Shown piece after piece: positions 4,278-57,239 of a DNA stretch of 64,000 nt (position 1 is the first letter of the stretch; each line of letters starts with the position of its first letter). The stretch lies in contig BFEA01000004.1 in the NCBI GenBank assembly GCA_003427395.1, positions 2,586,579-2,650,578 of the forward strand, given 5' to 3'. A model generated the notes under the pieces. That model did not search any database and was not told the DNA's origin. It saw only the letters and a program-made list of their open reading frames with translations. The stretch comes from Chara braunii. Lineage: Eukaryota > Plantae > Charophyceae. Both the position numbers and the translations under genes were made by a program.

Positions 4278-4348
4278 GCACCGTGTCTTGGCTGTAGTGG
4301 TTACGAGACTTGGCTCCTGAGGCCAAGGTCGCCGGTTCAAATCCGTGC
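4278..4348 (+). pseudogene. tRNA-like Pol III cassette, copy 2
   Basis: Same A box and anticodon arm, B box GGTTCAAATCC. Confidence 0.55.
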
Positions 4349-6484
4349 TTGCAAGGAGGAGGGCTTTGGCCCACTTGTGTGGATCTATATACCAGATTGT
4401 TGGCAGAGGAGACTATATTTGCACCAAAGATTCCGTCTTTAGTGGGCGTAGTACAAGCATTCTCTTTCTCTTTCTTTTTGGTCTTGAGTCACTCTGTCAG
4501 CCTCGTAACCATCCATCCAACCACTGGTCCTAAAGAAAGATGGGAAGTAGGAGGAAAGGTAGGATTTTGCCCTAGCTGGGCCAGCCCTTACTTGGACAGA
4601 GGGCAACTGCAGGCAAACGGTGTATGATCCAAGAACCACACAAAATCCAATCTTCACTAATTGTCATAGAACGATATCACAAGGAAAATCAAGAACTGAT
4701 CCTGTCAAACAGATCACAATGCAGGCCAAGCAAGTAGAGGATTATACAGTCACACCACGGCTTCTCGTTGATCTAACCCTCCATTGCATCTCCCACGGCC
4801 ACTCAAACCCTCCATTGCGACTCCCAAGGCCACTCATCTTCAATCTCCAGGACGGTTACTACATGTGAGGTGTGTCGAGAGTATAGATCCCGTACTTGTT
4901 ATCACCCGTCCCTGGCCCTGGCAAGCTGCCTGGTTGGCAGGAATGGAGATTATGCCCCTTTTGTTCCACATTCTCCCTCAGTGCAAGATTGGATGTGCCC
5001 TTCAGAGGTCTGCCCCAGCCTCATCTATACCAGAGTTGCGAATTCACAGATAGACTGACTTAAAGAATGCTTTGAGTTGCAAGTTGCAACGATAGAGAAT
5101 GCGAAGCTGAGACTGGATAGCTGACTCCAAACATACGGATTTCGAGTCCATGGGGCAGGGTTGGTTTGCTCGAACAGCGTCCCACACTGCCCGCTAAGGT
5201 TGCATCCCACCACAGTACAGCAAACGGCAGAGAAAAACCGAACTTAGATCAGGATTAGGACACAACCCAAGAAGTGCCTCATCACGTCCATCTCTTGTAC
5301 TCGCACAGCAGCCATCATCGTCAAGGAAGAGAATGTAGTTTTTACTTTTGCTGTATTAGCCTGTTCAAACCTTACTGCAGCAGGTTCTAGGATCATTTCA
5401 AGTGCCCAACATTGCCTCTCGAAGGTAGTTGGGAGGTACTGGAACATGTTGCAACCACCAAGCAGTTTTCACTGTAGATGCGAGTCATGTGACCTCTTTC
5501 CCGTGCTGGCCCTGGTGGTGAAGTCTTCTTGGTAAACACTTGTTTTCCCCTGGTCTTGATCCCATCTGTCACGATGTTTCGTCACTCAGTTCTTCTGCCA
5601 ATACAAGCTTTGCTCACGGGCTGAGGTCCTTGCTTCTCTCCATCATTTCTCTAACTGTCTTTCTTGCCTCCCCTCTCATATGGCACTCCAATGCTTCGAG
5701 TGGAAGCCTAATCCGGGGTCACCGTTGAGTTGGAATTAGGGGCAGGGTGGCCTTGCTTCTTCTCTCCACGAAGTGGGGACTGGTCTGGTATGAAGTTGTT
5801 ATGATGTAAGTTCAATCAGAATGCAGAATTCAAATTTAGGACAAGTCAAGGATTGAGAGCAAGAGAGGGAGAGGTTCCCGAGATTGCCCCAATGTTCTCT
5901 CCCTCCTCTTGCCCCTTTATCATCCCCCCCTTGTCCTTTCTCTTTCTCTTCGATAACCAAAAAGTCTTTGAACTGCGAACTAGCACAGTGAGTTGATTCC
6001 ATTAAAGTTGAGCAGACATCAAACTCAGCGAGCTTCATCATCAAAAACAATCCTGAATGAATTCGTGACAGGCCAGAAACACCTCGTCGCTGAGGACCTC
6101 GGAAGCGGGCACGGCGGGTGACAGACACCGCTGCCTCTGACTTCAACGAAGAGTAGGTGACCCCTCCCCGGGTTTCCTCACAACAGGCCCTGGGCGCCGA
6201 TTCAAGCCCTGGGCGAATTTTCACGAGGGGGCACAGGCCCTGGGCGCCGTTCGTTTAGGCGCCAGGCCATGGTACTGTTCAGGCGCCAGTCTTGGCGCCA
6301 CTCTTTTTTTGAGCGCCGAGTTCAGGCGCCAGGACTCAGGACACCACGTGAGGCCGAACCGGCACTATATATGGCCGGTCGGCCTCAGCTTGAGTAGGCA
6401 TTCGTAGGTATTCTTCAGGTAGTAGCAGGAGTAGTCGATGATAGCAGTAAGGTTCCAGCGCCAGCATAGCGCAGCAGCAGTGCA

Positions 6485-17001: not shown

Positions 17002-17372
17002 CGGTTTAGGGACAGTTCTGTTCACACTTGGCCCAGTGGTTTTGTCCGTCAAGAGGTGGAGGGTTCGATTCACACTTGGCCCGGAAATGAAATAGGTAGG
17101 CTGGGGTGGTGTGAAGAAGAGGACCATCTCTCTCTCCCAGTGGTGTTGTGCTGGAAGAGATGGAGAGTTCCGTTCTAGCTTGGCCCAGCGGTGTTTTAAG
17201 TGAAGAGGTGGTGAGTTCCGTTCTCACTCAGCCCGGAAACAAAATAGGTAGGTTGGCGAGGCATGGAGAACTGCACCCTCTTTCTCTCTCTCAGTGGTGT
17301 TGTGCAGGAAGAGGTGTAGACTTCTGCTCAGACTCGGCCGAAGAACTCTCCACCTCTTCGTGCACAACACCG

Positions 17373-17375
<3 letters not shown>
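16833..17375. repeat. Degenerate repeat units interleaved with (CT)n/(CA)n, ending in a hairpin at 17292-17375
   Basis: CCAGTGGT...AAGAGGTGG...TTGGCCCGGAAATGAAATAGGTAGG repeated; inverted copy at the end. Confidence 0.8.
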
Positions 17376-19367: not shown

Positions 19368-19424
19368 CAGACTGTCGGGGTTCAACCTCCTGATGAGTCG
19401 GTGAAAATCCGATGAAACAGTCTG
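19368..19424 (+). ncRNA. Type III hammerhead ribozyme (intronic, sense to the SAPS pre-mRNA)
   Basis: CAGACUG-UC^GGGG-UUCAA-CCUC-CUGAUGA-GUCGG-UGAAAAU-CCGAU-GAAA-CAGUCUG; complete core and three stems; cleavage predicted after 19376. Confidence 0.88.
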
Positions 19425-24183: not shown

Positions 24184-25823
24184 CATGGGCTCTGATGTTC
24201 TCGTTGGTTTGCTGTCCATCACATTTCGTTGGCACAGTTTCCAACACTAGTGTTCTAGCATGTCCTCTTCGACAGGATCCATCTCATTGACCGACTGTAT
24301 ACGATTTTGGAATGGACCGGCTGAACTAGGTTATGGGAGCCACAAGAGGCATTCATGAGCTGTGTGTTGACCAGATTCCTGGCATCATGGTAATTGCCAA
24401 CTATACTGCTCAGTTAAGGGCCGATTGTAGCTTGTTCATTAGGCAACACGAACGCGTAGATAGCCTAGCAGCATCTGGATCTCTGTCGTCATAGCCTAGC
24501 AGCTTCGGGATCTCTGTCTTCCTCCAGTCGCGTGCTTGGATACGGCATCTTTCTTTGTGTCCTCGTATGCGCCTTGAGAAAAGGGTTACAGCATAGTAAA
24601 GGACTAAGGTGTCATTCCTGGCCTAATGCCATGTGTTCCCCACGAAGAAGTGACTGACGAATCTAATTGCAGCAGCAAGAATGATGCTAGTCTGATTGGT
24701 TTCAACTTTTAAAACTTGAAAAGGAAATGACAAGGGTTTGTTAATAAAGTTTTGCAATACTCTGCCAACTTCACATGAAGGCGTTCAGTCATTCAATGCC
24801 ATCCAAAGATTCCAACCTAGTTTCTTATTGCTAGTTTGCTAGGTGCGGTGCAATTGTCGTACTCTGTTGTTTTCTCAGTGCATGGGCTTTTGGCTCTGAC
24901 CTTTTTTTTTTTTTTTTTTTTTTTTTTTTCAAAGGCCCATCTATTCTGGGGGCGGCAATCCCGTTGCTCATCAGCGGCAAGCCAAATGTACGTGGACACA
25001 ACAAGATTCAGGTACAACCACCCTTGCAGCTCTAGTCGCTTGCACAAGGGGGGGGCCTACTTCGGCCGTTCTCCCTCCAAACCTTGACTCATTTGCGGGG
25101 GTTCACTTACTGGTAGCACCCAGACACGCAGCATGTGGATCCTGTGAACGGCGGGGTGCGGGGGAGAGCCGCCTGGCAGCCTCACCGACCGCTCTGCATC
25201 CAAACTCTAGTTGTGTATTCTGTCCTCGAGTAGTATCCCTACCTTCTGCTTGCCACTGACATCCCGCCCTTGCATTTTGCTGACATCCAGAGACCTTGCC
25301 TACTGACTGCCTTCCCGCTACTTGCTACAGTCTTGTCATGCGCTTAGTGCTTAACCTAGCGCTGTATGTGCCATTACATTCCACGTAGTGTGCCCATGCT
25401 GCTCTCAGGCTCCCCTAATATCCTTCAGTCTGTGTATAGTACCCCGGCCTTTTCCTTTTCGGGTTTGACTCCCTTCCCACCCTCCCCCTCCTCTCTCCTA
25501 CTTGTACACGGTGACCTACCTATGCTCCTTCTACCCTATCATCGTTCCTCTCCTAATGTGTCTACACTACAACTATTTTTTCCTTTCCTCATCCATTCAC
25601 ACTTGTCTTCCAAGTAACTGTGTTATGTTGGTTTCCGCTTGACATGTCTGTAGCAACAGAGGCCCAAACGAGACACGGCCAGACTGGGGATCCAGAAATA
25701 GCAACTGTTGGTGAGGGGTACTAAGGGCCCCATCTCCTCCAAATTTTCCTTCTCCTTGATGGTCCAACACAAGCAGCGGGGTGTGATGGACCGACGTATA
25801 GCCAGTAGTCATAATGCCACAAG

Positions 25824-26697
25824 ACACCTGTGATTTCATGCCGTGCTTCGTTATCCGGTGGCCCATCAAGCCCCGCTGCATGTGTTGGACTTCTCCTTTG
25901 AGAGGAGACCAGGAGACCACCGCAACACACCTGTGATTTCATGTCTTGCTTCGTTATCCGGTGGCCCATCAAGCCCCGCTGCATGTGTTGGACTTCTCCT
26001 TTGAGAGGAGACCAGGAGACCACCGCAACACACCTGTGATTTCATGTCTTGCTTCGCTATCCGGTGGCCCATCAAGCCCCGCTGCATGTGTTGGACTTCT
26101 CCTTTGAGAGGAGACCAGGAGACCACCGCAACATACCTGTGATTTCATGTCTTGCTTCGCTATCCGGTGGCCCATCAAGCCCCGCTGCATGTGTTGGACT
26201 TCTCCTTTGAGAGGAGACCAGGAGACCACCGCAACACACCTGTGATTTCATGTCTTGCTTCGCTATCCGGTGGCCCATCAAGCCCCGCTGCATGTGTTGG
26301 ACTTCTCCTTTGAGAGGAGACCAGGAGACCACCGCAACACACCTGTGATTTCATGTCTTGCTTCGCTATCCGGTGGCCCATCAAGCCCCGCTGCATGTGT
26401 TGGACTTCTCCTTTGAGAGGAGACCAGGAGACCACCGCAACACACCTGTGATTTCATGTCTTGCTTCGCTATCCGGTGGCCCATCAAGCCCCGCTGCATG
26501 TGTTGGACTTCTCCTTTGAGAGGAGACCAGGAGACCACCGCAACACACCTGTGATTTCATGTCTTGCTTCGCTATCCGGTGGCCCATCAAGCCCCGCTGC
26601 ATGTGTTGGACTTCTCCTTTGAGAGGAGACCAGGAGACCACCGCAACAAACCTGTGATTTCATGTCTTGCTTCGCTATCCGGTGGCCCATCAAGCCC
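25824..26697. repeat. 103-bp tandem repeat, ~8.5 near-identical copies, cut off by an adapter
   Basis: ACACCTGTGATTTCATG...GAGACCACCGCAAC recurs every 103 bp. Confidence 0.95.
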
Positions 26698-26735
26698 CTG
26701 TCTCTTATACACATCTAGATGTGTATAAGAGACAG
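26698..26735. other. Nextera mate-pair junction adapter (assembly artifact)
   Basis: Exact CTGTCTCTTATACACATCT+AGATGTGTATAAGAGACAG (two inverted Tn5 mosaic ends). Confidence 0.98.
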
Positions 26736-29700
26736 GGGAAAAGGAGGTTATGGCGGAGGAGGAGGGAAGAGGAGGTTATGGAGGGAGAGGGAGAAGGGAG
26801 GATGGAGGTTGTGGCAGTAGAGGGACGAGGGAGGATGGAGGCTATGGCGGTGGAGAGGGGGGGAGTCTATGGCCGAGGGAGCCAATGGAGAGGGAAGAGG
26901 AGGAGGGAGGTTGTGACGGAGGAGGGATGGGCACATTTATGTATCTGGATGGAGGAGGGAGACCATGTGGCAGGAGGAGGGGCGGGAGGGAGGGAGGCTC
27001 TGGCGGATGAGGAGGGAGGGAGACTGATGGAGGAGGAGAAGGCAGGAGGGAGACTATGGCAGAGGAAAGGAGCCTGATGTGGAGGACGAGAGAGGGAGCT
27101 ATGGCGGAGGAAGGAGAGAGGGAGACTATGTGGAGGGAGGTTTACTGATGGAGTAGGATGGGGGCGAGAGGGAGACTGATGTGGAAGGAGGAGATGGTGG
27201 AAGAAGGAGAGGGCGACTATGTGGAGGGAGGAAAGACTGATGGAGGAGCAACAAGAAAAAGAGCAAGACAAAGTAGAAGAAGAAACGAAAAGAAGAAAAA
27301 GAACTGAAGAGACTAAGAATAAGAGGATTGACGCAGATCGACGGCCAAGGTACAAAAAAAAAAAAGAAGCCATGAAACAGGGCCTACCAGGCCCCGAAAA
27401 ATTTTGCGGCCGCCGCCTAATTTTTTTTCCCCCTTTGGGCCGTAAACCTGCGGTGCCAATTTTTTTTTTTTTGAGGTTTTTGGGGGGTGGCGCTGAGGGT
27501 GCCCGGGTGCCTGCCCGAGGGGGTCGCCTGGCCGGGCGCCCTGGGCGCCCTTCCGGGCGACCTGGGGGTCCTGGGCGCCCAGGCTGGAAAGCTAGGCATA
27601 TACCCTGTATCAATGGTTTTTTTTTAAGCTTCTTTTATTCAAACCACGACTTCCTCGAAGCCTCCTTTTGCCGATTCAGATTCAGAGTCACACCGCGCGC
27701 CAATGGGTGCCGAAGCGCCACCGCAGCGTTTTTGTTTTTTTTGGCCCGCGCCGCCAGCCTTTGTGGTTCGGTATCCCCAAGGCCCCAAAGATATGTTGTT
27801 TTTTTGAAACACACACGCTCCTCCTATTATGGGGGGCACCAGTCCAACTACTGTTCCCAAGTAAGCACAAAATTTACATGGTATACATGACACTGAGATG
27901 ACAAGGAAAGCAGGATGGGTGGTCACCAGCCACTGGGAGACTCCCTTCGGTACCCATTCATCACAAGCCTGCACAACTGCCTCCCCCTCTTCCTCCTGCA
28001 AAGAACCCCCCTCCCCCCCTCCCCAACCTCCTGCGAGGCGGGGACCTGGGTGGCATTGTGAGTAGGTGAGTGGGAAAAATAACTGAAGGGAGGAAACTCT
28101 ATATTCTCTGTCCATCAATGGACCAGGAGAATGTCTCTCCTCCTTTGGAGGGATTGAACAGGGGCCCTTCGCCCTTCGTTGAAGATAGATCGATATTGGA
28201 CTATATGTTGTCCACAATTCAGGCATTACCTGGCAACGGGAAAAAGGGAGATTGTTATTCTGTTGCTTGACATGGAGAAGGCCTCAATAAGGTAGGTTGG
28301 AGCGGAAGGTTGGGAGGGAGGGAGTCTCGTAAGGAATAAGGACCTCTAAAGACCAGTTGGATATCCGATGGCCAACAAAAAAAAACGAAAATAGAATATT
28401 TTGAAATTTTCTGCCCATCCCGGGGACCGCCAATATCCGGTAGGGGGAACCTTCCAGAAGCACGTGGTTAACTCGGAGGTGCACGCAGGATAGATGGATG
28501 GGGTACTGGTCGTTGCAAGGGGGACTAACAATTAGTGTCCTCCCTTAGGGGATTCTGCAGACTGTCAAAGCTTCATCCTTCCCACGGGTCATCGAAAGTC
28601 CGACGGAACAGTCAGGCACTTAACCCTAGTTGCGTATGCTTCTTTTTTCTTTTTCTTAGTTGCTTCAACGCGTTTGTGCTTTCCGCTCTCCGAAGTTAGA
28701 CCAGTCATACCTTGGGAAATCTGTGAACCAGCAAAATATATTTCGCCTGCGAGCTCTCGGCGAGAATATTTGGATGCCATGAGTGCACATAGGCAAAGTC
28801 CAGATTGCACACGCTATAGCGTTCAGTAGTAGTGGGTCCTATTTGCAGGATGCAGGTGAGGATCCACGACTTCGCAGCCTCCAGTATTCCAGTATTGTTT
28901 TGGCGGGATGTTGTGCGGATGTTTGCTTTGTACGACGGTGCTGCTGCAGCTTGCAAAGTATTTTGTTGTTGGTGATGACCAAATTCTTTGCCGGTAAGCA
29001 GATGGGGTAATCCAGTCAAGATGGACAAAGAGAAAGACGGACAAACGGAAGAAAACTGATGTACCTGCGCCTTTTTTTTTGTAACTGCTGAGAGGATCTC
29101 ACACCTTCAAGCTTTCCTTCAATTTCTCCATGCTCAGAATGAAAGGAATTCCCTGCCCATTCTCGACGACCAGGTTTTTTTTTTTTTTTTTCAGAAACGA
29201 AAAGAAAGAAAAAACTCCTGTCCATGTGCTTTCCTCGATGTGATTACAACCCGACTTCAGCGCTCATGTTCACAAAAACAAACAATAAGGGCACGTATAC
29301 TGGCGCTGGCACTTCGTTAATTGTATCTAACGGCAATTGCGACCTCACCGCGATGCATCTGACCGCAATCACATCCAGAGCTCAGTGTGAAAATTCCTAG
29401 TGTGGGTAGACCCTGCTCATCTCCTCCATTGCAGTGTGGGCATTTCGTCAGTGGCAGATGATTGCTAATGAGTTTGTTTATCTGGATTATGAACCCTTGG
29501 ACTCGTTTGAGATGCAAATGAGATTTTTTGTTCGGCATCGTCAGTGATTGAGGAACGTGCTATCGCTCAAGACTAGCATTGTAAGTTGTTGTGTTGCCAA
29601 AGTGTGCCATAAGGTTCTTGACGACGAGCTCATCTTGCACTGCGTTTTCGTCAAGCTCTCAATGAAAGGCTCATCTTGATCTGCTTCTCATGCAACTTTT

Positions 29701-44747: not shown

Positions 44748-46704
44748 AAAAGGAGGGGTTGAAAATGCCACGGGTTTTTGCATTGTAAAATGCAAGTATA
44801 TTTGCGTGTTCCATCGGGATCATAATTTTTATTGGCACAGGAAGGATATAACCTTTGTGAGTGCGTTTTACAAATTCATACTTCTTAAGTTGTTCTACAA
44901 ACTTCTTGATAGGGGTTTGGTGGAGAACAAGTCTCGGGTGTATCCTTCTTTGGCTTCCTTTTTCGTGCGCTTTGCGTCTAACCCATAAAAGAAAATTCCC
45001 TTAAGTGGATATGTGGAAGTACGATACGACGACTCAGAGAAACATGTGATTTTTTAGCCTATTGAAATGACTCAAGAATTTCGTTAGACAGAAAACCCCA
45101 AGAAGCATCAAACATTTCTGACAAAATCCATGGTGCGAATTTGATATAACAAGTACCGACTCCCAGTGCAACCTCATAAAAAGTTATGAAACATAGACCT
45201 TAAGAAATTGAAACACAAGCGGTTGTTATGGTGTTGGATCCTGAGTCTTTATTGTTTTGTCTTTTGTTTGCAAAATCGCAACGAAGTTGCTTTGACTGTT
45301 GCCCCTCTTATGATTCACAAATGGATTGCTTTATTTTTCTCTGCTTTTTATGTTTAACCATGTTGAAGGAACTTGGTCAAAATGAGTCCGTAACTTCAGG
45401 AGGAGTGCTTACTTACAGTCGCTGACTAAGGACCTCCGGGAGAGCTGTATGCGAGAAATCTTGCACATACTGTTTGGGAAAGACTCTCTGATGCCTATCT
45501 ATATATGAAGGCGTCGGTTATGATATTTCACTCAAAGATTTAGTAGGTTGGGTAGTCTTTGCAATATTTTTTTTTATTTTTTTTTAATGCACCTAATATA
45601 GAGTATCATCCATAGAAAACGACCATATGCTCGACCGAACCAACCAACCGGATTGGAATCCTTCCTTCTGGCATATAAATATGGAATACATACCTTTATC
45701 ATTTGTAGCAATTATATGGTCTTAATATATGGATCAAATACATTTCGTCCCATATTTTGGCTTGGAAGTCTTTCTATATTTTTGACTTCTTATTATTTTT
45801 TGCGTTGACTTTTTTTCTCACTTTTCTTGCTCCAACCAATACCTTTAAGCGAGGCATCGAAAGATGTCATAATGCTCCTACTCTGATGGCAATCCCTTTA
45901 ATACTTTGATTCGTTTACGCCACGATGAAGTTAGACTAGTGAGCTACTACGCTGTCGGGGCAGAAACCCTGACAAGGGTATCTGCATTGTATTTTCAATG
46001 TCGAACGAAGTTCGAATCTTGATGTAAGTCTCTGGGAATTGGTCTGATGAAAACGAGACGTGCTTATGGAAAGTTTTGACTTGTCTGCAATCTCCGACGA
46101 GATCGGAGGGATGCGCAGTCGTGGAAATAATAAAATTAGACCTATTCTATCTAAAAATAATGTCGCGCGGCTGCTACGGCCTAAGTGGCTAAAGAGAGAG
46201 TTGCGCCAGGGTATGGGGCCACGACGCAGCAAGCGTACGAAGTTTTTTGTTTTCTTTAGGGCCGCGGGGTCTGATTTCGAGCCTGGGGGCCGATAGGCAA
46301 ATGCCAAGGGTTACCCAGTTCGATAGCCGACCAAGCCGCGGATACGCGGCTAACCGGTATGGGTAGGCCGCAAGCTGAGTAAGCCGGCAAGCCACAGGTT
46401 GGGCAAGCCGGTAGGCCACAACTGGGGCAGGCCTGCTAGGCCACAGGCAGCCGGCACCTGAAAGGCTGAGGCAGGGAAGGTACCTGGGCAAGCTTTTCAT
46501 ATTGAAGAGCTGCTCCTGTTCAATCTGGAACAGGAACTAGCCCAGTAGGTACGTACATGACTCTCACCCTGCTGATATAGGGATTGAATCTAACTCGTGG
46601 TACCGCAGGGCTAGCTCCTTTTGGAGCTCCCCGTTTTTTTTTTAGAGGCGCGGTCGACCTAGGCCGCCCGATCATGAAGATCACGCGGTCCAGATTGGCG
46701 TGTG

Positions 46705-46770
46705 AGATTAGCATGGCCCCTGCGCAAGGATGACACGCATAAATCGAGAAATAGTCCAAATTTTTTTTTT
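46705..46770 (+). ncRNA. U6: 3' half of U6 snRNA (AGC triad, ISL, 3' tail, oligo-T) lacking the 5' stem and ACAGAGA box
   Basis: AGATTAGCATGGCCCCTGCGCAAGGATGACACGCATAAATCGAGAAATAGTCCAAATTTT, essentially plant U6 from ~nt 43 on. Confidence 0.95.
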
Positions 46771-47135
46771 CGAGTCCATCTGGACTCGAACTCGGATCTG
46801 CATTTCAACAGCTCGTGGGTGAACCCACGAACGCAGCACGATCTTTGGCAAAACGGAAACCTGAAAAAAATAAATAATAAAATCTAAATTAACTACAATG
46901 CCAGATGGCGCTTAGCGAAGAGATTGGGGACTTACAGTCCCCATAGAGGACAGTAGGTGCCCGTTTTCATCGGGCAACCGTTTTTTAGTAAACGTAAGTT
47001 CTTTTATTTTTTTATTTTTTTTCTTTTCCTTAGATTTTGTTCTAGATTCTTTTTAGATTTTTTTTTTTTTTTTTTTCAAGATTCTGTTTTGTCTGCCAGG
47101 GCGCCCGTTCGTTTTTGACGAACGGACGAAACCGG

Positions 47136-47196
47136 GGCAGGCTGTTTCGTTGGAGTTTCACCAACTCATCAGGAGGCTGAACCTCGACAGTCAGCC
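47136..47196 (-). ncRNA. Type III hammerhead ribozyme, tandem copy A
   Basis: Reverse complement GACUG-UC^GAGG-UUCAG-CCUC-CUGAUGA-GUUGG-UGAAACU-CCAAC-GAAA-CAG. Confidence 0.88.
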
Positions 47197-47280
47197 TCTA
47201 CGCCTGTATCCGACGCCAATAATGACCAGGTACAGGCGCGCGCGAGAGAGAAGAGTTGGAGAGAGAGGGGGTAAGGGACA

Positions 47281-47345
47281 GTGGCAAGCTGTTTCGTCGG
47301 ATTCTCACCGACTCATCAGGAGGTTGGACCTCGACAATCTACCAC
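47281..47345 (-). ncRNA. Type III hammerhead ribozyme, tandem copy B
   Basis: Reverse complement GUGGUAGAUUG-UC^GAGG-UCCAA-CCUC-CUGAUGA-GUCGG-UGAGAAU-CCGAC-GAAA-CAGCUUGCCAC. Confidence 0.9.
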
Positions 47346-47382
47346 TGCGCCCGAATCGGGCGCTGGAAGTGGCCAGACTCAG

Positions 47383-47446
<64 letters not shown>

Positions 47447-49434
47447 CCTACCTACCTACCTACCTGCCTACCTCAGGTTGGCCCTTCATCTTAAAAAGCA
47501 ACCTTAGGATGAGCAAACTCGAGTGAATCTACTCCAAGGACGACGGGAGATTCACTCTACAGGTAGGCAAGGTAAGTTTTTTTTTTTTTTATTTTTTTNN
47601 NNNNNNNNNNNNNNNNNNNNNNNNNNNNNNNNNNNNNNNNNNNNNNNNNNNNNNNNNNNNNNNNNNNNNNNNNNNNNNNNNNNNNNNNNNNNNNNNNNNN
47701 NNNNNNNNNNNNNNNNNNNNNNNNNNNNNNNNNNNNNNNNNNNNNNNNNNNNNNNNNNNNNNNNNNNNNNNNNNNNNNNNNNNNNNAAAAAAAAGAACGA
47801 AAACAAAAACGAGGGAACTGCGCCTCGTGAGACCAAAAAGAAAGAGTCTTTTGACTGTGTGGCAGCAAGAAGAGCTACCACTTCAATTTTGGAAGATTGG
47901 CTGTGGCCGCGAGATCTTAGAACTCACGGCTCACAGCCTGCGCGTGTGGGAAAGGGGACTGAGGGAGGTAGAGGGAGAAAACGGGGTAGTTGGGAGGAGG
48001 AGGTCCTACTCCTCCCAACCTGCCAACTGTCCTCCCCGTTTTCAGGGGAGGGTAGAGGGAAATAAGGGAAGGCGGTTGCATGCAATAGCACGAACCTGGC
48101 TGAGGTAAAAGCCAGGTTCAGTAGGAATTAGAAAATTCATTTTTTCTTTTTCTTTTCTTTATTTCTTGTGAGGACACTTGTCCCAACGTGGTGCTACCTC
48201 TGGCACAAGCTGCCAGAGGTAACTGTAAGGCTCCCGTTTTTTAAGGGAGCCTGAAAATTAAAGGGTCACTAAGGAAAAGGCTAAATACAGTTTTTTCCTC
48301 GATGTATCTGCCCTGGAAAATGGGTCAAGATGCATAAAACTGTAAAGGGCTGTATCTCTCCAACCCCTTATCAGAAAAAGAAAAGAAAACCTTTGGTGAC
48401 GACTGGGTACGAGAACCTTCTCGTTAGGAGAGCGTAAAATTTATACGGTCTTCTTGGGTGTACCGTTAAAACTTCACTTAAGGTCAGTTAAAGTGACTTT
48501 GTTCCCTTCACACCTGAGTGAACCCACACTTGCTTTGACCTGTTTTTACTGAATGTTCATTGAAAAAGGGAAGAGAATGTGTGTGTTTGCGTGCATGACA
48601 GGGAGTTTGACAATGGAAAAGGATTGCATGGTGGTCTGTGTGTCGTTGAGTTTTGACTGCAGGTACGGCGTGTGGGCTGAAATGGATGATGGTGATGATG
48701 GTGAAAGGATGATTGTCTTCTCATCTCTATGCTTATGGATGTGTGTAAACTAAAGTGAAAAGAAGACGACGAAAAATAAGCGACCACAAAGAAGCGAAAC
48801 CTGGATGCACATAGATTTTTTCCCAAGGTCACTTATTCTTGCCCGAATGACCTATTTGTTTATGCCCGTCTGTCTAAATGACTTTCTCTTCTATGACCTT
48901 TCTTTCTTTCGTCTAAGTTGCTCTTGACGTCAGGCGGCAAGGATTTGCTCGTCTGCCGGGTAGGTGTTTTTTCTTATTTCTAGGAGGCATCTGGGGCGGG
49001 GGTTCGTTGCCATAGGGGCTGGCCCTGTTATCGACTCAGAGTGGACCGCTTTACGGGGGGGTACCATGCCGATTCGGTGGATATGGTCCGACTTCTGATA
49101 TCCGAGTCTTGTGCTCGGGCGAGGAGGAGTATCCCAGACCACTTCCTAAGGGGAAGGACAAAAGTGTCTGCACGGACGGACTTAAGGTTCTTGGTGCCTT
49201 ACATAAGGAGGAACTGCCATAGCATTATTTTGGTGGCCATTTTAGGAGCCACTGACGTATGGGGAACTAGTGCCACAAGCAGCCCAGTTTGTGTCCTACT
49301 AGCCAAACGGGGTGTATTTAGACGATCCAGACGTGGCTGGCCGTGCCATAAGAAGCACGGGCCAGAAGGAAGACAAATGTTTTAAGTGATACTTAGTTTT
49401 AACTTGATCACATTCGTCTTCCTTTTTCTTTCAG

Positions 49435-49800
49435 ATGACTGCGGGATCCATGGACTTATTCATTTTCTACGACCGCAATTCGGCGGCCGAAAGGGTTGAA
49501 ATCCAAAGGCGTAATGGAGAAAGAGTAGAAAGGATAGGCCGACTTGTTTATAACCCATCAAAGTTGTACTCAGAGGAGGACGTTCCGCGGTTTTGGGATG
49601 GCAGTGCGCAGAGACCCCTTAGACGGCTTATTTTCAGGAGACTGACCGGCTTGGATGTTATTCACTACGAGTTCGCGCCGCCATTGCCGGAACGTCACTA
49701 CGTTGATATGAACTTGGTGATATTGCAGTCATACGAACTCAATCCACGGGTGGACGAGATCCCTGAAATAAGGTTGACGTTCGTTCGTTACGTGCTTTGA
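49435..49800 (+). CDS. Unknown accessory ORF (121 aa, probably longer before decay) inside the putative LTR
   Basis: ATG directly after CTTCCTTTTTCTTTCAG; globular-looking composition; coding-like sequence continues to ~50430. Confidence 0.4.
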   Translation: MTAGSMDLFIFYDRNSAAERVEIQRRNGERVERIGRLVYNPSKLYSEEDVPRFWDGSAQRPLRRLIFRRLTGLDVIHYEFAPPLPERHYVDMNLVILQSYELNPRVDEIPEIRLTFVRYVL

Positions 49801-51418
49801 CTAAATGAGCGACAAGGCCCATGCTTTGGCAGATACTACACAGAGCGGATACGTGCCAATAGGTTCGCAGATGCCTGGAGCAGATGCCTGGAGCACGACA
49901 AGACCTGACAATCCCGAGGTATCTGCTGGTTCGTGATACACACGAGGAGGATCTCATCAGGAGTGCAGCGTGACTTTTACGAGTTCGAAATGGATCTCCT
50001 ATCGACTGGTTCGGCTTCATTGGACTGCATCAAAATGGCGAGGGATTTTCCCCTAATACTCGCACGGATTTTCTAGCCAACACGGCTCGGACTCCCGACG
50101 AGCTTTACGAATATACTTTGTTTTTCACCACGCGAGTAACCTCCAACGTCTCTCTCGAGTCATTGTGAGTATTACGATTACCTCGTCCGGCAGACGTCTT
50201 GGCATCGTCCGGATCCGGGACACAGAGACTCGACACCTATTTGGACTTAGTCGACCTCTCCGAGTTATAGTTTGGAGGTTAGCCTTTCGGATGACCTCCT
50301 TCTATAATACTCGAATCATTAGAGTCATGCGATGTGGACGAGTGTCTACTCTGATTTTTGACGACGACGAGCTGACACGTTTAGATTTGTTGGAGGCACA
50401 GGTGCGTGGCGGGCGACAGGTTTACCAGGGTTAGACGTCATCTTCTGAAATCTTACTCAGATTTAAGAAAACACTTCGCATGGACTCAGTCCCGTTGAGG
50501 AAACCATATTTCACGAGGTAATCTAAAAACAAAACAAAACATTCTGTGTAGTTAGGACCGCCAGATGGATAGTATTCGGACTACCCCGATGATTTCACTA
50601 TCATGCTTTGGCATTGAGGGGTAAATACATAGGTAAGGAAAAAGTTAATAAAAGTAAACCGGAAGGCGTTTGAAATATGATCTTGAAAGGCAAACAAATT
50701 TAAACGTCAATTTATAAAATAAGCTTGCTATATTAACAAAGAGAAGAAAAACCATAAGCATGACCTCTTTTCATCAGACCAAAACCTATCAAAAAGTTGT
50801 GTTATAATTGTCAAGTTGGATGATTGAAAGAATAACTTTTATGTGTATTGTTTTGTGATTTTCGTCTGAATAAATTATAGATATATCTATGTTTGTATGT
50901 AGAAACTGAAAGCAAGGGACTAGGGTGAAATTGTTGTTTGTTTTTATACTTGATTAAAAATCGCTCTAGTCGACCGGCGTACGCTCCATCCTTAGGAGAT
51001 CAGCGCCCTAAGTGACGGACGACGTCCGAGTCCACAGACGTTTAATCACGTACACCTATACTACAGCGTACGAGCAAACGCTCTCGGCTGATCCACCTCT
51101 GTGATAGCATTTAAAAGTTTTCGCATGTGGATCGGTAACTCGGTAGGGATACGCCCCTAAGTGTGGTGACAACCTCTTAGGGAAGACAAACTCATGCCCC
51201 GCGGAAACCTATCCTGTCGTAGGGGACCGCGGGACGTACAGCTGGCGCACCCGGCTAGAGCGGCGAAGGATCGACGCGACCGCGCACCCGTCTCGGCGGC
51301 TCGCTGCATTAATTATGCGTCGCTTCCGAGTTGTCTTTCTTTATGTTTTCTGGTTTTTCTCCTGCGTAACATGGCCGGGAGGGCCCTCGTTCACGCGAGG
51401 GCCGATGCGCTCAACATG

Positions 51419-51584: not shown

Positions 51585-54401
51585 ATGTGTGATGTTATTG
51601 TTTTTGTGTCACTCAAGCTGCTGGACGGGAGTGACGGTGAGAGGAGGAAGGACACTAAGGAACTAGCCAAGGCAATTGAAGAATCAGCCATACAACGTGA
51701 TCAAAATCCAAAAGTGGATGTGCCACTGTTTGATGGCAATAATGCCTCAGGCTGGGTCGAGAAGTTTGAACAGTTAGCCAGTTGTCGAGAATGGACAGAT
51801 AAGGAAATGTTATAGAAGGTGAAAAAATATTGTAAGGTAGCATATAAGGAGGAATTGGTAGCCCTGGTAAACGAGTCAAAAAACTGGGCGGAGTTCAAGG
51901 AGAAATTACTGGATAAATACCAACTGGAAGAACAATTATTAGATTTAGCTGACCTCCGAAAAGTTGTTCGGCGGGAATTCGGGTCAGCCAAGCAATTCTT
52001 GAGAGAGTTTGAACGAGTTGCTCGACTGATACCTGACTTGCATGATAAGGACAAATGCCTTATATTCCTAAACAACTTTTCAGCGGTTGAGTGGAGAGAG
52101 TTAATGAAGGACATGCAGGGGAAATATGATTGGCTAAAGATAAAAAACAATGTCCTAGCGGGAAGCTTTGACCAGATGCTTTACAGGTTATTAAAGCAGC
52201 GTAAGGAGGACCGCGAAAAGGAGGATGTTCGTAAGGATAAGGATCGCGAAGTCTTCAAAACCCTGTCAGAAATTAAGGGAATGATAGCCGATATGCGTGA
52301 AGAACGTTTGAAGTTCGAATTAATGATAGTTAAAGCGAAAGGAAGCAAAAGAAAAGGAAAAGAAGTTTATCTTGGGAGTAGTAGTGAAAGTGAAAGCGGG
52401 GAAGAGGAGCCTCCAAGGAAATTGACAAAGGCTGAAAGAAAAGCCTTAAATCAACTTCGAGGAGGTTAGGGAACGTTCAAAAAGCAGGGAAAGAATGGAG
52501 GGAAAGGTGAAAATGACCAGACGCAACCAGAACAATTCCAGCCCAGACCAAGCCAGCAACAAGCTGAGGGAGGTCAAGGACGAGACCGAGGAAATTATGG
52601 GGGACGCGGGAATTGGGCTAAGGACTTCACGTGCAAATTCTGTGACCAAAAGGGACATATTATGCGATTTTGACAGATTCTTGCCAAAGACGAGGCTGAA
52701 GGCTACGTATTCACCACTATTCGCAGGGAGGTCTTCGATTTTAAGGGGAATTTCATTGACCCCAACATCGAAGGGGGTATCAGAAAAGAAGCCTTCCGGC
52801 GTATGGGTCGCAGCATACCTGCTACCTTCAGGTTGGCCTCGCCTGAAGAAGAAGAGTCCTTTCAATTAGAAGAGGCATTTCAGTCCTTGCAAATTGATGA
52901 GCCGGAAATGGAATTGGGAGAGCTGACAGAACAGGGCGAGGCACTTGTCCAGAGAACGAAGAAAGTTACAAAGAAAATGAGACAATGTCGAGATGAAATT
53001 GTTCAGTTATGTCTTGATATGGATGAGGAATGGCCAGGCTTTCCAAATGTATATCTATTTGGAGGATGGGATAAATCATACAATGCTCCTTCGACTGCAC
53101 CAGAATCTTCACATGGTCCAAGACCCATGACTGCCACATTAATGTCACGACTAGTTTTTAAACTTATGGCTCCGACAACATTACCACAGATACGAAAGGC
53201 CCGGAGAACATTAGCTAAGAGAGCAGCGGCAGAAGGCGCCTCCAAGGAACCTGTCGAAGAAGTCCTCATCCCAGACGAAGAAAAAAACGACTCTGAGAAA
53301 GAAGACGAAAGGTTGCATGCAGAGGATGAACAACAAGCCAAACATCGTGCTTCTGAGCGTGAGACTGAAAAAGAGAAGGAAGTTGTTGAGGAAGAAGAGT
53401 CGCTACGAAAGAAGAACGTTTATACAATCCCTATTGAAAAGGGGATTGATATTGAGCAGATTGTCGACCGGATTTTGGAGAGTCAGCGTGACTTAGTCAC
53501 GCTAAAGGAATTTTTGGCCGCATCTTCAAAGATCCACGACGAGCTCAAGCAACGATTGACAAGGAGGAAGGTAATAACTGTCAAGATTGAAGACATTATT
53601 CCTCCAGAAGTTAATTGGGCACCTGCAGGAACTAAGATGGATTGGCGATGCGTTGCCATTGGACTGTTGAAGGTACACGTGGGACAGGGTGAGTTCTCTG
53701 CTCTCGTTGACGATGGTGCAGAAATGAATATTATACGAGAGAAAGAAGCAATCGAGGCAGGAATTTGGATCAATCGATCTGATACTGGATTTCTAGTGGG
53801 TGCGAGTGGATCAATTCCCTTTTGTGGCACGACAAGTGATGTCACAGTCGCGGTAGGAAAGGTGAAAGCTGGAAGCTACTTTTGTGTTCTACCCAGAGTA
53901 GAACACGAGGTATTATTGAGAAGATTTTTTCTGTGCCGAACTGAGAGCATCATCTTCAATAAGCATGATGGCTCAATGTTTGTCGCCTTGTGTGACCCTG
54001 TGTGTGAATATTATGAAGTAAGAAAATGTGAAAACACAAGGCCAACAAATTCCAGAAATCGGCTCAATCCGGGATCTTACTCTTTCTTGGAATCAGAAAA
54101 GCTAAGGCGAGAGAAAAATTCATTTGAGGGTTATGAGGAACCGAGAGAATTCTCTATTGCCCTGCCCAACATCTCGCAGGCAATAGATTTTCTTTCGACA
54201 GAAGTCTCGGTTGATCCAGGATTGGTTCAGGCATTGGCCGATGTGATATGTGATGTGGGAGGCGCAGGGAACATGACCTTAATATATCGTTTTGACACAC
54301 CTCTAGAGGCAAGTACACTAGTTACTCCTGCATCCAAGCAGAGTCTTTTTTTAGAGGACGGAAGTTGGCCACAGGATCAAAGCGCAAGCATAAGAAAGTA
54401 G
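51585..54401 (+). pseudogene. gag: gag-protease reading frame with in-frame stops
   Basis: VPLFDGNNASGWVEKFE capsid-like motif, CKFCDQKGHIMRF* zinc knuckle ~52630, ALVDDGAEMNII aspartic protease; all in one frame. Confidence 0.85.
54347..54353 (+). promoter_or_regulatory. Candidate -1 ribosomal frameshift heptamer T TTT TTA
   Basis: Correctly phased in the gag-PR frame; the -1 frame leads through KHKKVGVKA*PV into the RT ORF at 54485. Confidence 0.65.
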
Positions 54402-54484
54402 GGGTAAAAGCGTAGCCCGTGCCTGTCTTGATCACCCAGGAACAAGAAATTTATTACAAAGAGGAGAGAGAATAAGTCAAGACA

Positions 54485-56882
54485 ATGAAGATAAAGGCAG
54501 AAGAAGGACTGTGTCGATTAACAGAAGGCAGAATCAAGGAAATGATCATTGGAGATGATGAATTTCTTACCAAGGCAGAAACTGACTTCCTCGTAAGTAC
54601 TTTAAAGGATTTACATCTGGCGTATGCCTTTGATGATAACGATCGAGGAAGGTTGGATGTCGATATTATTCCAATGATCAGGATACATACAGTACCGCTT
54701 GAGCCATGGAACGTAAGAGGTTCGCGATATCCGAATCCAGATGATCACCGGAAAGTGATTGAGTATTTGGACGGGAAGATTCAGACGAAAGTAACAGACT
54801 ATTCTTATGGGTCATATGCATCTCCTTGGTTCTGTTTTATTAAACCGAACGAGGTCTTCAGATGGGTCCAGGATCTGCAAAGGTTGAAAGCAGTGACGGT
54901 TCGAGATGCAGGTGGGCTTCCACATGCAAATCTACTGTCGGAATCATGTGCAGGTCGATCTATCATAACATTGATTGATTTGTATTCTGGTTATGATCAA
55001 TTCCCCTTGTATACAGCAGACAGACCAATGACGGCAATGCATACACCTAGGGGATTGATTTATATGTGTTCAACACCTCAAGGTTGGACAAATGCCGTCG
55101 CGATTGTACAACGGTATATGATGAGGGTCATGCAGCCACTTTGTCCTGAAGTGACCTCTCCATATATCGATGATTTGGCTATTCCAGGACCTCGTGAGAA
55201 AAATGAGACAGAAGTGTTACCAGACATTCGCAGGTTTGCCTGGGAACATGTACGCGATGTGAAAAAGGTTTTGCGAAAGCTAAAGGAATATAACCTCACA
55301 GCTAGTGGTGTCAATACAGACACTGCATGCGAGAGGCGACCATTCTGGGATTTTTATGTAATGAGAAAGGTCGTAGGCCGGACGCAAAAAAAACGAATAA
55401 AATTTTGGAATGACCGACACCTTATAAATTTATCACGGATGTACGAAGTTTTATTGAGACTTGTGGATTTTGGCGTATCTTAATCCAAAGGTTTGCAGCA
55501 AGGGCAGAACACCTTAGGAAATTGATACGCAAAAATCAGGATTGGGAATGAGGACCCAGACAACAGGCAGCAGTGAATGACATGAAGGCTGCATTTCGGC
55601 AAGGTGAGATGATCCTCGACGTTCCTTGTTTTGACAACGATCCGAATCGACCCTTCATTGTGGAAACAGACGCAGGGCCTACAACCCTGGGTGGTGTCCT
55701 AATTCAAAAAGATAGGGAAGGGCGAGAGCGACCGTTGAGATTTGAAAGTCGAACTCTGAATACCGCCGAGCGTAATTATTCTCCATTCAAGAAGGAAACA
55801 CTAGCTGTCCTTCATTGACTTCGTACATTCAGGAATTACGTATTTGGAAGGAGGTTTGTTTTGAGAGTGGATCCGACAGCTTTGGCTAAATCAGTAAGGA
55901 AACTCTCTCCTTCGGATCCAATTGTTGCTCGATGGTTAACGTATATTTGGATGTTTGATTTTGAGATTGAGCGTATCTCGGGTGCACAAAATCGGGCTGA
56001 TGGATTGAGTCGAATCGAATGGGATTCATCTAAGGACCAGATCGAGGATTCAATCCCTGTGGATAATTTTCTGGATAAGGAGGAGTATCGATTGACTATT
56101 AATTTTATTAGCTATTTGGAAGATGCTTCGTCCCGATTGGGAAATCCATTTGGAACGCGCCAAATTCTTAGCAAGTGCGTTCTGAACTGGTAATGAGTGA
56201 TGCTTTTGTTGAAGAAGACCCTTGGGGAGAGAGAAATGCAGAGCAAATGATGAGTCTAGCATTATCTGACTCAGTCAACATCACAGACGAACCCCTGACA
56301 ATTGAGGGAGGTTACGATCAAATTGATAAAGCCTCTAGAATATGTGCAAATTTGTTATTTCTTGTGAATTTCTTAATTCAAGATGATGGTCGAAGAAGGA
56401 AGCAATGAAATCAGAGAAGTCTTTCGTAAGAATGAATATGATGAAATCTATGAGAAGATTGGGTTATGGTTGAATGGGGAAGTTGATGAAAATGAGGTGG
56501 AACCAGAAGTTCGCTTGAAGAGTAAAAATTTTGTTATCTGATATGGTCATCTTTTCAAAAAGTCTGATAATGGTGTGGGAGGACGAGACAACTTCACGTG
56601 ATTGCCGCACTACATGATGGAGTTGCCGGTGGTCACAGGTCGGCACGAGTTACCTTACGAAAGATTCAACATCTCTATTTCTGGGAAGGAATGACAAAAA
56701 TGGTTGTTGAATTTTGTAATTCCTGCATTCTTTGTCAAAAAAACTTTCGGTATATTGAACCTCTTAATCCTCGATACGTGGTAGAGCCAGGAACTGTGAT
56801 CCATCTCGATTTATTGGTGATGCCACGTGGAATTAATGGATACAAATATATCTTTGATGCCAGAGATAACTTGACCGGCTTC
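54485..56882 (+). pseudogene. pol: pol: reverse transcriptase, RNase H and integrase N-terminal part
   Basis: YASPWF, DLYSGYDQ, PQG, YIDD; PFIVETDAG; NRADGLSR; LHDGVAGGH..CILCQ; HLDLL..DNLTGF. Confidence 0.93.
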
Positions 56883-56896
56883 GAGATGGATACATT

Positions 56897-56969
56897 GCAT
56901 TCTTAGCTCAGCTGGATAGAGTAACAACCTTCTAAGTTGAAGGTCACAGGTTCAAATCCTGTAGGATGA
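56897..56969 (+). tRNA. trnR: Mitochondrial-derived tRNA-Arg(UCU), NUMT copy
   Basis: GCATTCTTAGCTCAGCTGGATAGAG...CTTCTAA...GGTTCAAATCCTGTAGGATG. Confidence 0.85.
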
Positions 56970-56979
56970 TGAATTATTC

Positions 56980-57066
56980 GGCAGAGTAGCTGAATGGTTA
57001 AAAGCGACAGACTGTAAATCTGATGAAGGCTATATTTCTACATAGGTTCGAATTTTGCCCTTCCCA
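56980..57066 (+). pseudogene. trnY: Mitochondrial-derived tRNA-Tyr(GUA), degenerate
   Basis: CAGA-CTGTAAA-TCTG anticodon arm, long variable arm, mismatched stems. Confidence 0.8.
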
Positions 57067-57239
57067 CTTAGTGCGAATTTGATATAACAAGCACTGACTC
57101 CTAGTGCAACCTCATAAAAAGCTATGAAACAAAGACCTGAAGAAATTGAAACACAATTGGTTGTTACCAAGGCAGCCTCTTCGTGAATGAAGAAAACGAC
57201 GAAACGCGTCTGCTACTAAACTACCGAGTAGAGGTGTCA

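Follow-up and report, generated by a model that had tools for sequence, protein, structure and literature searches.

Tandem type III hammerhead ribozymes within a Ty3/Gypsy LTR of Chara braunii, probably a captured end of a hammerhead-bearing retroelement

The LTR retrozymes of plants carry their ribozymes in direct repeats of 300-400 bp, together with a PBS and a PPT, and give rise to circles of 600-1000 nt (PMC4918200). Beyond the PBS and PPT boxes, no sequence similarity between plant retrozymes and Gypsy elements was reported (PMC4918200). The non-LTR retrozymes of metazoans bear type I hammerheads, are arranged as dimers to large multimers, and produce abundant circular RNAs of 170-400 nt (PMC7229834; 10.64898/2026.07.22.740005). 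Two Chlamys types of Penelope-like element (PLE) of C. braunii carry canonical hammerheads, one of them at the 3' end (Craig et al. 2021, PMC8557442), and the Chlamys PLEs of this species occur in very high copy numbers, with 5' truncation and partial tandems, and target microsatellites (PMC8557442).

The window analyzed here was the whole stretch of 64,000 nucleotides of C. braunii DNA (GCA_003427395.1, contig BFEA01000004.1, positions 2,586,579 to 2,650,578). An earlier note on this DNA had described two complete type III cores on the minus strand, with predicted cuts 147 nt apart. An Rfam search of 1.5 kb agreed with this description: both cores, designated HH1 and HH2, matched RF00008 (Hammerhead_3), with E-values of 4e-8 and 6e-8, respectively. 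The curated gathering score of RF00008 is 48.5 bits, and both matches scored lower because of mismatches in distal stem III; the pair was therefore absent from the whole-window run at the gathering threshold and was recovered by the E-value search. The third copy, which the note had placed near 19368, exceeded the gathering score in the whole-window run. A covariance model of our own (R1) was built from the three window copies and used to search related loci. The hammerheads of the window were as follows.

47286-47340, minus strand: HH1, type III, predicted cut 47333/47332; RF00008 44.5 bits, R1 82.5 bits
47139-47193, minus strand: HH2, type III, predicted cut 47186/47185; RF00008 44.0 bits, R1 83.2 bits; counterpart of the single ribozyme of L001, L002, L005, and L008 in the LTR alignment
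19369-19423, plus strand: third hammerhead, of a different subfamily and outside any LTR, stem III a perfect 7 bp; RF00008 49.1 bits
28559-28614, plus strand: fourth copy, decayed, with a mutated core; blastn 73%, R1 20 bits

HH1 and HH2 each consisted of GUC, a stem I of 5 bp with a 3-nt loop, CUGAUGA, a stem II of 5 bp with a 7-nt loop, and GAAA. Stem III had four contiguous pairs in both, and HH1 had two extra pairs beyond a mismatch. Every catalytic nucleotide and the closing pairs of stems II and III were intact in HH1 and HH2. The conserved core (CUGANGA, GAAA, the NUH triplet, G10.1-C11.1, and A15.1-U16.1) was present in HH1, HH2, and the copy at 19369, and the pair had the three-helix layout of type III, with helix III open, helices I and II closed by loops, and covariation. 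Loop 2 agreed with the Rfam type III consensus UGAaA. Stems I and II of both ribozymes were present in the minimum-energy fold, and for the isolated 55-mers the hammerhead fold was less stable than the MFE structure by 1.6-5.6 kcal/mol. The two ribozymes diverged by 16%, and none of their nine differences fell in the core (p about 0.03). The covariation of stem II to which the note had pointed (GUCGG/CCGAC vs GUUGG/CCAAC) recurred in the paralogues and in the reads of the family, and the loops, which it had seen to drift, were variable in these reads.

Both ribozymes stood under the Rfam gathering score, an N gap (47599-47786) was only 260 nt away, and no single contig of the DNA run spanned both ribozymes, as could be the case for a chance match or an assembly artefact. 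However, E-values of about 5e-8 were obtained in 1.5 kb, the same motif was found in paralogues, and the spacer was found in the DNA run, where one contig matched 47170-47243 exactly. Chance or artefact is thus scarcely credible as the source of the pair.

The surroundings of the pair were identified as a Ty3/Gypsy element with the following parts.

45953-51416, plus strand: 5' LTR of a degraded Ty3/Gypsy element, 5.5 kb, TG...CA, homologous to the flanks of related elements
51819-56906, plus strand: remains of gag, protease, RT, and integrase, arranged as in Ty3/Gypsy elements; the element breaks off at about 56.9 kb
Pfam domains of these remains, plus strand: Retrotrans_gag (gag, 51819), gag-asp_proteas (protease, 52803), RVT_1 (RT, 54485), and Integrase_H2C2 (56598)

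The segment 45950-51480 of the window was homologous to both the upstream and the downstream flanks of related Gypsy elements, and a TGG-type PBS-like site lay 2 nt beyond the LTR end. Self-comparison of L001, L004, L005, L006, and L008, which belong to ten related loci sampled from GCA_003427395.1 (L001-L010), revealed LTR pairs that were 93-98% alike. The region that the earlier note had called Gypsy LTR-like was thus a true LTR, as judged from flank homology and the LTR pairs of related elements. The host has the features of Ty3/Gypsy elements, namely paired LTRs (in the relatives), TG...CA, a PBS after the 5' LTR, and the order gag-PR-RT-IN. The 3' LTR of the local element falls outside the window, and the repeat search and self-blast of the window showed no second LTR and no further copy of the flanks. 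All of the 53 homologues of the neighboring protease ORF were C. braunii proteins. The pair sits 1.2 kb from the 5' end of the LTR and, as the note had stated, antisense to gag-pol, with gag-PR-RT-IN on the plus strand and the hammerheads on the minus strand.

Several other features were observed in or near this LTR. The 3' half of a U6 snRNA followed by a T run was located inside the LTR (46704-46765, plus strand, Rfam 58.7 bits); its block (46698-46752) ranked fifth in conservation among the 55-nt blocks of the five-LTR alignment (0.76) and was present in all related LTRs. Short hairpins, each with a T run resembling a Pol III terminator, were found around the U6 half (46600-47140, plus strand), and the same layout was seen in L006 (18200-18440). 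Two tRNA-like genes (56897-56970 and 56980-57060, plus strand; 53.5 and 32.6 bits) interrupted the integrase region of the Gypsy element. An adjoining 96-nt stretch (57071-57166) recurred with 91.7% identity at 45133-45228, just upstream of the LTR. Elsewhere in the window, a tandem array with a 103-bp unit (25714-26837) had about ten copies at 98% identity.

In six related loci, an Rfam search at the gathering threshold gave no hammerhead match; the copies there scored below the cut-off and were found with R1. Every related LTR that was assembled at the homologous place (seven LTRs of four elements) contained exactly one hammerhead, antisense to gag-pol, at the positions below.

L005, 4343-4397 and 17320-17374, antisense to gag-pol: one hammerhead in each LTR (R1)
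L001, 4152-4205 and 18601-18661, antisense to gag-pol: one hammerhead in each LTR (R1)
L002, 3031-3086, antisense to gag-pol: one hammerhead (R1)
L008, 5677-5731 and 17451-17505, antisense to gag-pol: one hammerhead in each LTR (R1)

The alignment of these modules (A3) revealed a shared order of (CT)n, a leader of 45-50 nt, the ribozyme, a short conserved stretch, a hairpin, and an A-rich run. Two ribozymes were present only in the LTR of the window, and each of the seven related LTRs had a single one, which could be an undercount, as a short-read assembly may collapse tandem units. Assembly gaps lay at or near the ribozyme-microsatellite part of the LTR in many copies, including the gap of the window named above, and the assembly may therefore contain too few tandem units.

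The pair and its surroundings could be divided into the following parts.

47386-47445, plus strand: (AG)n, which is (CT)n on the ribozyme strand and precedes the leader in every related LTR
47341-47385, minus strand: leader of unit 1, homologous to the leaders of unit 2 and L002 in alignment A3
47194-47285, minus strand: spacer between the ribozymes, read from the sequence
47268-47285, minus strand: part of the spacer, short tail of unit 1
47236-47267, minus strand: part of the spacer, CT-rich and (GC)n tract
47194-47235, minus strand: part of the spacer, leader of unit 2
47058-47138, minus strand: tail of unit 2, with a conserved stretch after the ribozyme, a hairpin (about 47104-47125), and an A19 run (47058-47076) in alignment A3
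47186-47332, minus strand: hypothetical 147-nt RNA from double self-cleavage, its ends deduced from the two cut sites

Comparison of the units showed that 47136-47267 matched 47283-47416 with 74.6% identity over 134 nt. The leader of unit 1 shared 57% identity with that of unit 2 and 59% with that of L002. HH2 with its tail was closer to the single module of L002 (leader 69%, tail 68% alike), and the tail of unit 2 was common to the related LTRs (identity 68-72%). Relative to the other LTRs, HH1 with its leader and short CT-rich tail formed the extra segment. As judged from these identities, the second unit is old, because the units were only 74.6% alike and their leaders 57%, which is below the value for unit 2 and L002. 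A simple recent duplication of the unit was rejected on the same unit and leader identities.

The earlier note had regarded the pair as a free-standing retrozyme-like module next to (AG)n. The (AG)n was confirmed, but the module did not stand free beside it, since the whole module was LTR sequence and the same place held a single ribozyme in seven LTRs of four elements. The note had also asked whether the flanks belong to the LTR or to a Penelope-like element, and both were Gypsy LTR sequence common to four or more elements. PLEs form partial tandems with hammerheads, and those of C. braunii have canonical ones (PMC8557442), so the pair might have been the ordinary terminus (pseudo-LTR) of a PLE at this locus. 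This is very improbable in view of the LTR sequence on both sides; in addition, the only nearby RT belongs to the gag-PR-RT-IN array, and the leader and hairpin flanks of the pair were low-copy, unlike the flanks of the genome-wide hammerhead family described below. A PLE terminus at the locus of the pair was ruled out, as the neighboring ORFs were Ty3/Gypsy gag-PR-RT-IN on the other strand and the flanks were LTR.

Raw reads of three oligo-dT RNA-seq runs and the contigs of one DNA run were aligned to 47081-47384 at 80% likeness, leaving out the U6 half and the microsatellites. A total of 2910 DNA contig pieces aligned to this segment. The summed word depth of the DNA, which is not a copy number, was about 350,000-600,000 over the two 55-nt cores and 20-68 over the flanks. 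The RNA depth over the cores was 600-1400-fold; every read fitted only partly, and the reads therefore came from other copies of the family. The family in C. braunii is thus very large, and the ribozyme is all that its members have in common. The note had suspected a dispersed family, and this was borne out by the copy at 19369-19423, the seven related LTRs, and the abundance of the core in the DNA, with transcription elsewhere in the genome.

In the reads of the family, no variant of at least 10% occurred within CUGAUGA or GAAA, and the loops were variable. The only variants near the cleavage triplet were at C17 of HH2 (47186 G>A, about 10% of depth) and a GUU consensus in the RNA reads that spanned the site. 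Positions 47163 and 47151, the U-A pair of stem II, changed together to C-G in about 85% of the reads. The RNA reads through the cleavage site (47183-47193) had the consensus GUU vs GUC in the DNA contigs, with a consensus agreement of only 0.53-0.62; such a difference would arise if self-cleavage removed GUC transcripts from the reads.

The unaligned read ends revealed at least two flank types, designated as A and B. Type A was complete in L009 (23785-23912, plus strand), where the copy was 5'-truncated inside stem I, had (TA)n on both sides, and carried the ribozyme about 75 nt from its 3' end. It looked like a clean case of a 5'-truncated copy inserted into a (TA)n microsatellite, and many truncated copies of the family adjoined (TA)n in the reads. 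Type B corresponded to the copy at 19369 and to L001 27262-27345. This behavior fits the 3' end of a retroelement inserting by target-primed reverse transcription. By description only, the free copies (L009 and the reads) share with Chlamys-2_cBra and PLE-X (PMC8557442) the species, the canonical hammerhead at the 3' end, the copy number, 5' truncation, microsatellites, and partial tandems; unlike these elements, the window pair lies inside a Gypsy LTR and not at a PLE terminus. Insertion behavior and the published description (PMC8557442) together point to a probable link of the family to PLEs.

The depth at the pair itself was different. Over the spacer, the word depth of the DNA was 35-65, vs 12.2 for the sole contig that matched the locus exactly, which hints that the dimer form is inherited within one LTR subfamily. 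A few other tandem hammerhead joints were present in the DNA contigs of C. braunii. In the three oligo-dT runs (about 4.2 Gb), the RNA depth was essentially zero over the spacer (47202-47267), leader 1 (47345-47384), and tail 2 (47081-47124). In poly(A) RNA, both the locus of the pair and its close paralogues are thus silent. The three runs showed neither back-joined reads nor an accumulation of read ends at the cut sites, the libraries being of a kind that would not capture a small circle.

Predicted cuts after C47333 and C47186 would give the 147-nt product, and a 147-nt circle is possible in principle, although hypothetical. Folded as a circle, this RNA had an energy of -36.9 kcal/mol (z -0.61) with 57% of the bases paired, which is unremarkable. 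Its longest purine run on the sense strand was 5 nt; thus, it had no polypurine tract. No PBS-like match of at least 8 nt was found with the 3'-end complements of the two window tRNA genes, a weak test that did not include tRNA-Met.

The pair resembled plant LTR retrozymes in the type III fold, the 5-bp stem I, the short loop 1, and the UGA-type loop 2, as well as in the LTR location, the Ty3/Gypsy link, and two ribozymes of the same orientation that could release a ligatable RNA. Unlike these retrozymes, it belongs to a charophyte, in which the LTR is 5.5 kb long and part of an autonomous gag-pol element, both ribozymes lie in one LTR, and they are antisense to the element and its PBS. Direct repeats of 300-400 bp around a non-coding center of 300-600 bp were not found; the only repeat was the one of 134 nt (74.6%), with both ribozymes in a single 5.5-kb LTR. 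A PBS of the tRNA-Met type and a PPT were not seen in the ribozyme-sense RNA between the cuts, the PBS test being weak. The module had no ends of its own and no 4-bp target duplication, and its flanks continued as shared LTR sequence.

With metazoan non-LTR retrozymes, the pair shared short tandem hammerhead units at the low end of 150-450 bp and membership of a family that is abundant genome-wide; a derivation from Penelope-like elements has also been proposed for those retrozymes. In contrast to them, the pair was of type III, was embedded in an LTR, and had no RNA detected in oligo-dT libraries. It formed only a diverged dimer with a period of 147 nt and units 74.6% alike, there was no array, and its relatives had one unit. 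The hammerheads of Avsunviroidae viroids and viroid-like satellites have the same type III topology, and the short helix III of the pair is also found among them. However, these are RNA replicons of 220-400 nt that are rod-like or branched and highly paired, whereas the pair is encoded in DNA, spans 147 nt, and has an ordinary folding energy.

Retrozymes are defined by tandem hammerheads, and in animals their units can be as short as about 150 bp (PMC7229834). Every catalytic nucleotide was kept in spite of the divergence between the ribozymes, and the C. braunii DNA contigs contained a few other tandem joints. The pair could on these grounds be an active miniature retrozyme, which would be transcribed and cut at both sites, and whose 147-nt RNA would be circularized and serve as an intermediate of transposition or replication independent of the LTR. 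We consider this quite improbable. RNA was absent from the spacer, leader 1, and tail 2, and there were no back-joined reads, a negative result that is weakened by oligo-dT libraries, which would miss a small circle. The flanks were part of the LTR in all relatives, the product had neither a purine run longer than 5 nt nor a PBS-like match in the spacer, the circle was not unusually stable, and stem III was weak, with the hammerhead fold above the MFE. Tandem hammerheads alone do not identify a retrozyme.

Between LTR lineages, the ribozyme was 82% identical, whereas the leader reached 48% and the tail 62%. In the five-LTR alignment, the 55-nt window of the ribozyme had a mean identity of 0.77 (97.6th percentile) and ranked fourth among the non-overlapping blocks. 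The top three blocks of the five lineages were 48980-49034, 48475-48529, and 49042-49096, with mean identities of 0.93, 0.83, and 0.80, respectively. In nine LTR copies, variation affected 2 of 14 core positions vs 20 of 41 others (one-sided Fisher p 0.02). Of the pair cells of 11 copies, 94.5% were standard, and three stem pairs showed compensatory double changes, in an alignment that was fitted to the model and thus favors pairing. The differences between HH1 and HH2 were far fewer than the divergence of the leaders predicts (p 3e-5). Changes were also found in individual copies: G12 was replaced by A in L002, the hammerhead of the L001 3' LTR had a 7-nt insertion in stem II, and those of L005 and L008 had GUU in place of GUC.

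In L005, the two ribozymes (4343-4397 vs 17320-17374) had 4 differences in 55 nt, compared with 1.9% LTR-wide; the LTRs were 98.1% alike overall, and the leader was identical. Two of the four differences were a compensatory change of U-A to C-G in stem II. The mismatch could come from gene conversion with other copies or from an assembly mix-up of a high-copy sequence.

One explanation of this conservation is that selection maintains the hammerhead as a functional component of the Gypsy LTR, in which it would cut antisense or read-through transcripts, for example limiting double-stranded RNA and silencing, and that the pair is a doubled copy of this device. The rank of the ribozyme as the fourth most conserved block, the low variation of the core, the three compensatory stem pairs with 94.5% of cells paired, and the complete motif of L005 and L008, which are the youngest of the elements (LTRs 97-98% alike), are in its favor. 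However, L002 has lost G12, the L001 3' LTR carries the insertion in stem II, and L005 and L008 have GUU rather than GUC. Moreover, within one element (L005) the ribozyme was not better kept than the LTR, and no antisense LTR RNA was seen in the three oligo-dT RNA-seq runs. Gene conversion from the many other copies of the family, which number thousands, could also be the source of the conservation pattern. Selection of the hammerhead as a part of the LTR is rather unlikely. It is unlikely, too, that selection has preserved a functional type III hammerhead, as a tandem pair in some copies, in the LTRs of an autonomous Ty3/Gypsy lineage of a streptophyte alga, where it would either cut antisense or read-through transcripts or shed a small circular RNA.

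The pair is probably an old insertion of the end of a hammerhead-bearing retroelement that was captured by a Gypsy LTR and copied with it. In the ancestral step, a hammerhead-bearing RNA end would have been inserted beside (CT)n in the U3-side part of a Ty3/Gypsy LTR, in antisense orientation. The most likely source of this RNA end is the 3' non-coding portion of a Penelope-like (Chlamys-type) element, inserted through target-primed reverse transcription. We infer the insertion rather than observe it, because no empty site was found and the place is an assembly (N) gap in L003, L004, L006, L007, and L010. The module of (CT)n, the 45-50-nt leader, ribozyme, hairpin, and A-rich tail would then have been copied with the LTR. 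In the LTR lineage of the window, a second unit of about 147 bp (leader, ribozyme, and short CT-rich tail) would have arisen upstream of the first, either by an old tandem duplication via CT-rich tracts or as a surviving partial-tandem insertion that was lost in other lineages. If the minus strand were transcribed, each ribozyme would fold and cut after GUC, and the 147-nt RNA, with a 5'-OH and a 2',3'-cyclic phosphate, could be closed into a circle by tRNA ligase. One point speaks against capture as cargo: the ribozyme is conserved more than a passive passenger should be (82% vs 48% and 62% in the leader and tail, respectively).

So far, LTR hammerheads were only known from the small non-coding retrozymes of flowering plants, in which the link to Gypsy consists of shared PBS and PPT boxes. 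The searched literature yielded no autonomous Gypsy family with a conserved type III hammerhead in its LTRs, and it is this residence that is new, the hammerhead family itself being known and abundant. In this charophyte, the LTRs of a full Gypsy family themselves contain the ribozyme, which is among their better-conserved blocks. If the hammerhead is indeed a selected part of the LTR, this family would be the first ribozyme-bearing autonomous LTR retrotransposon and a possible bridge from the hammerheads of PLEs to the LTR retrozymes of flowering plants. If the conservation reflects function, it would represent a new use of self-cleaving RNA by a retrotransposon and a route by which ribozymes move between classes of retroelements; if it does not, the LTRs of C. 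braunii would provide a clear case of one mobile element preserving the fossil of another.
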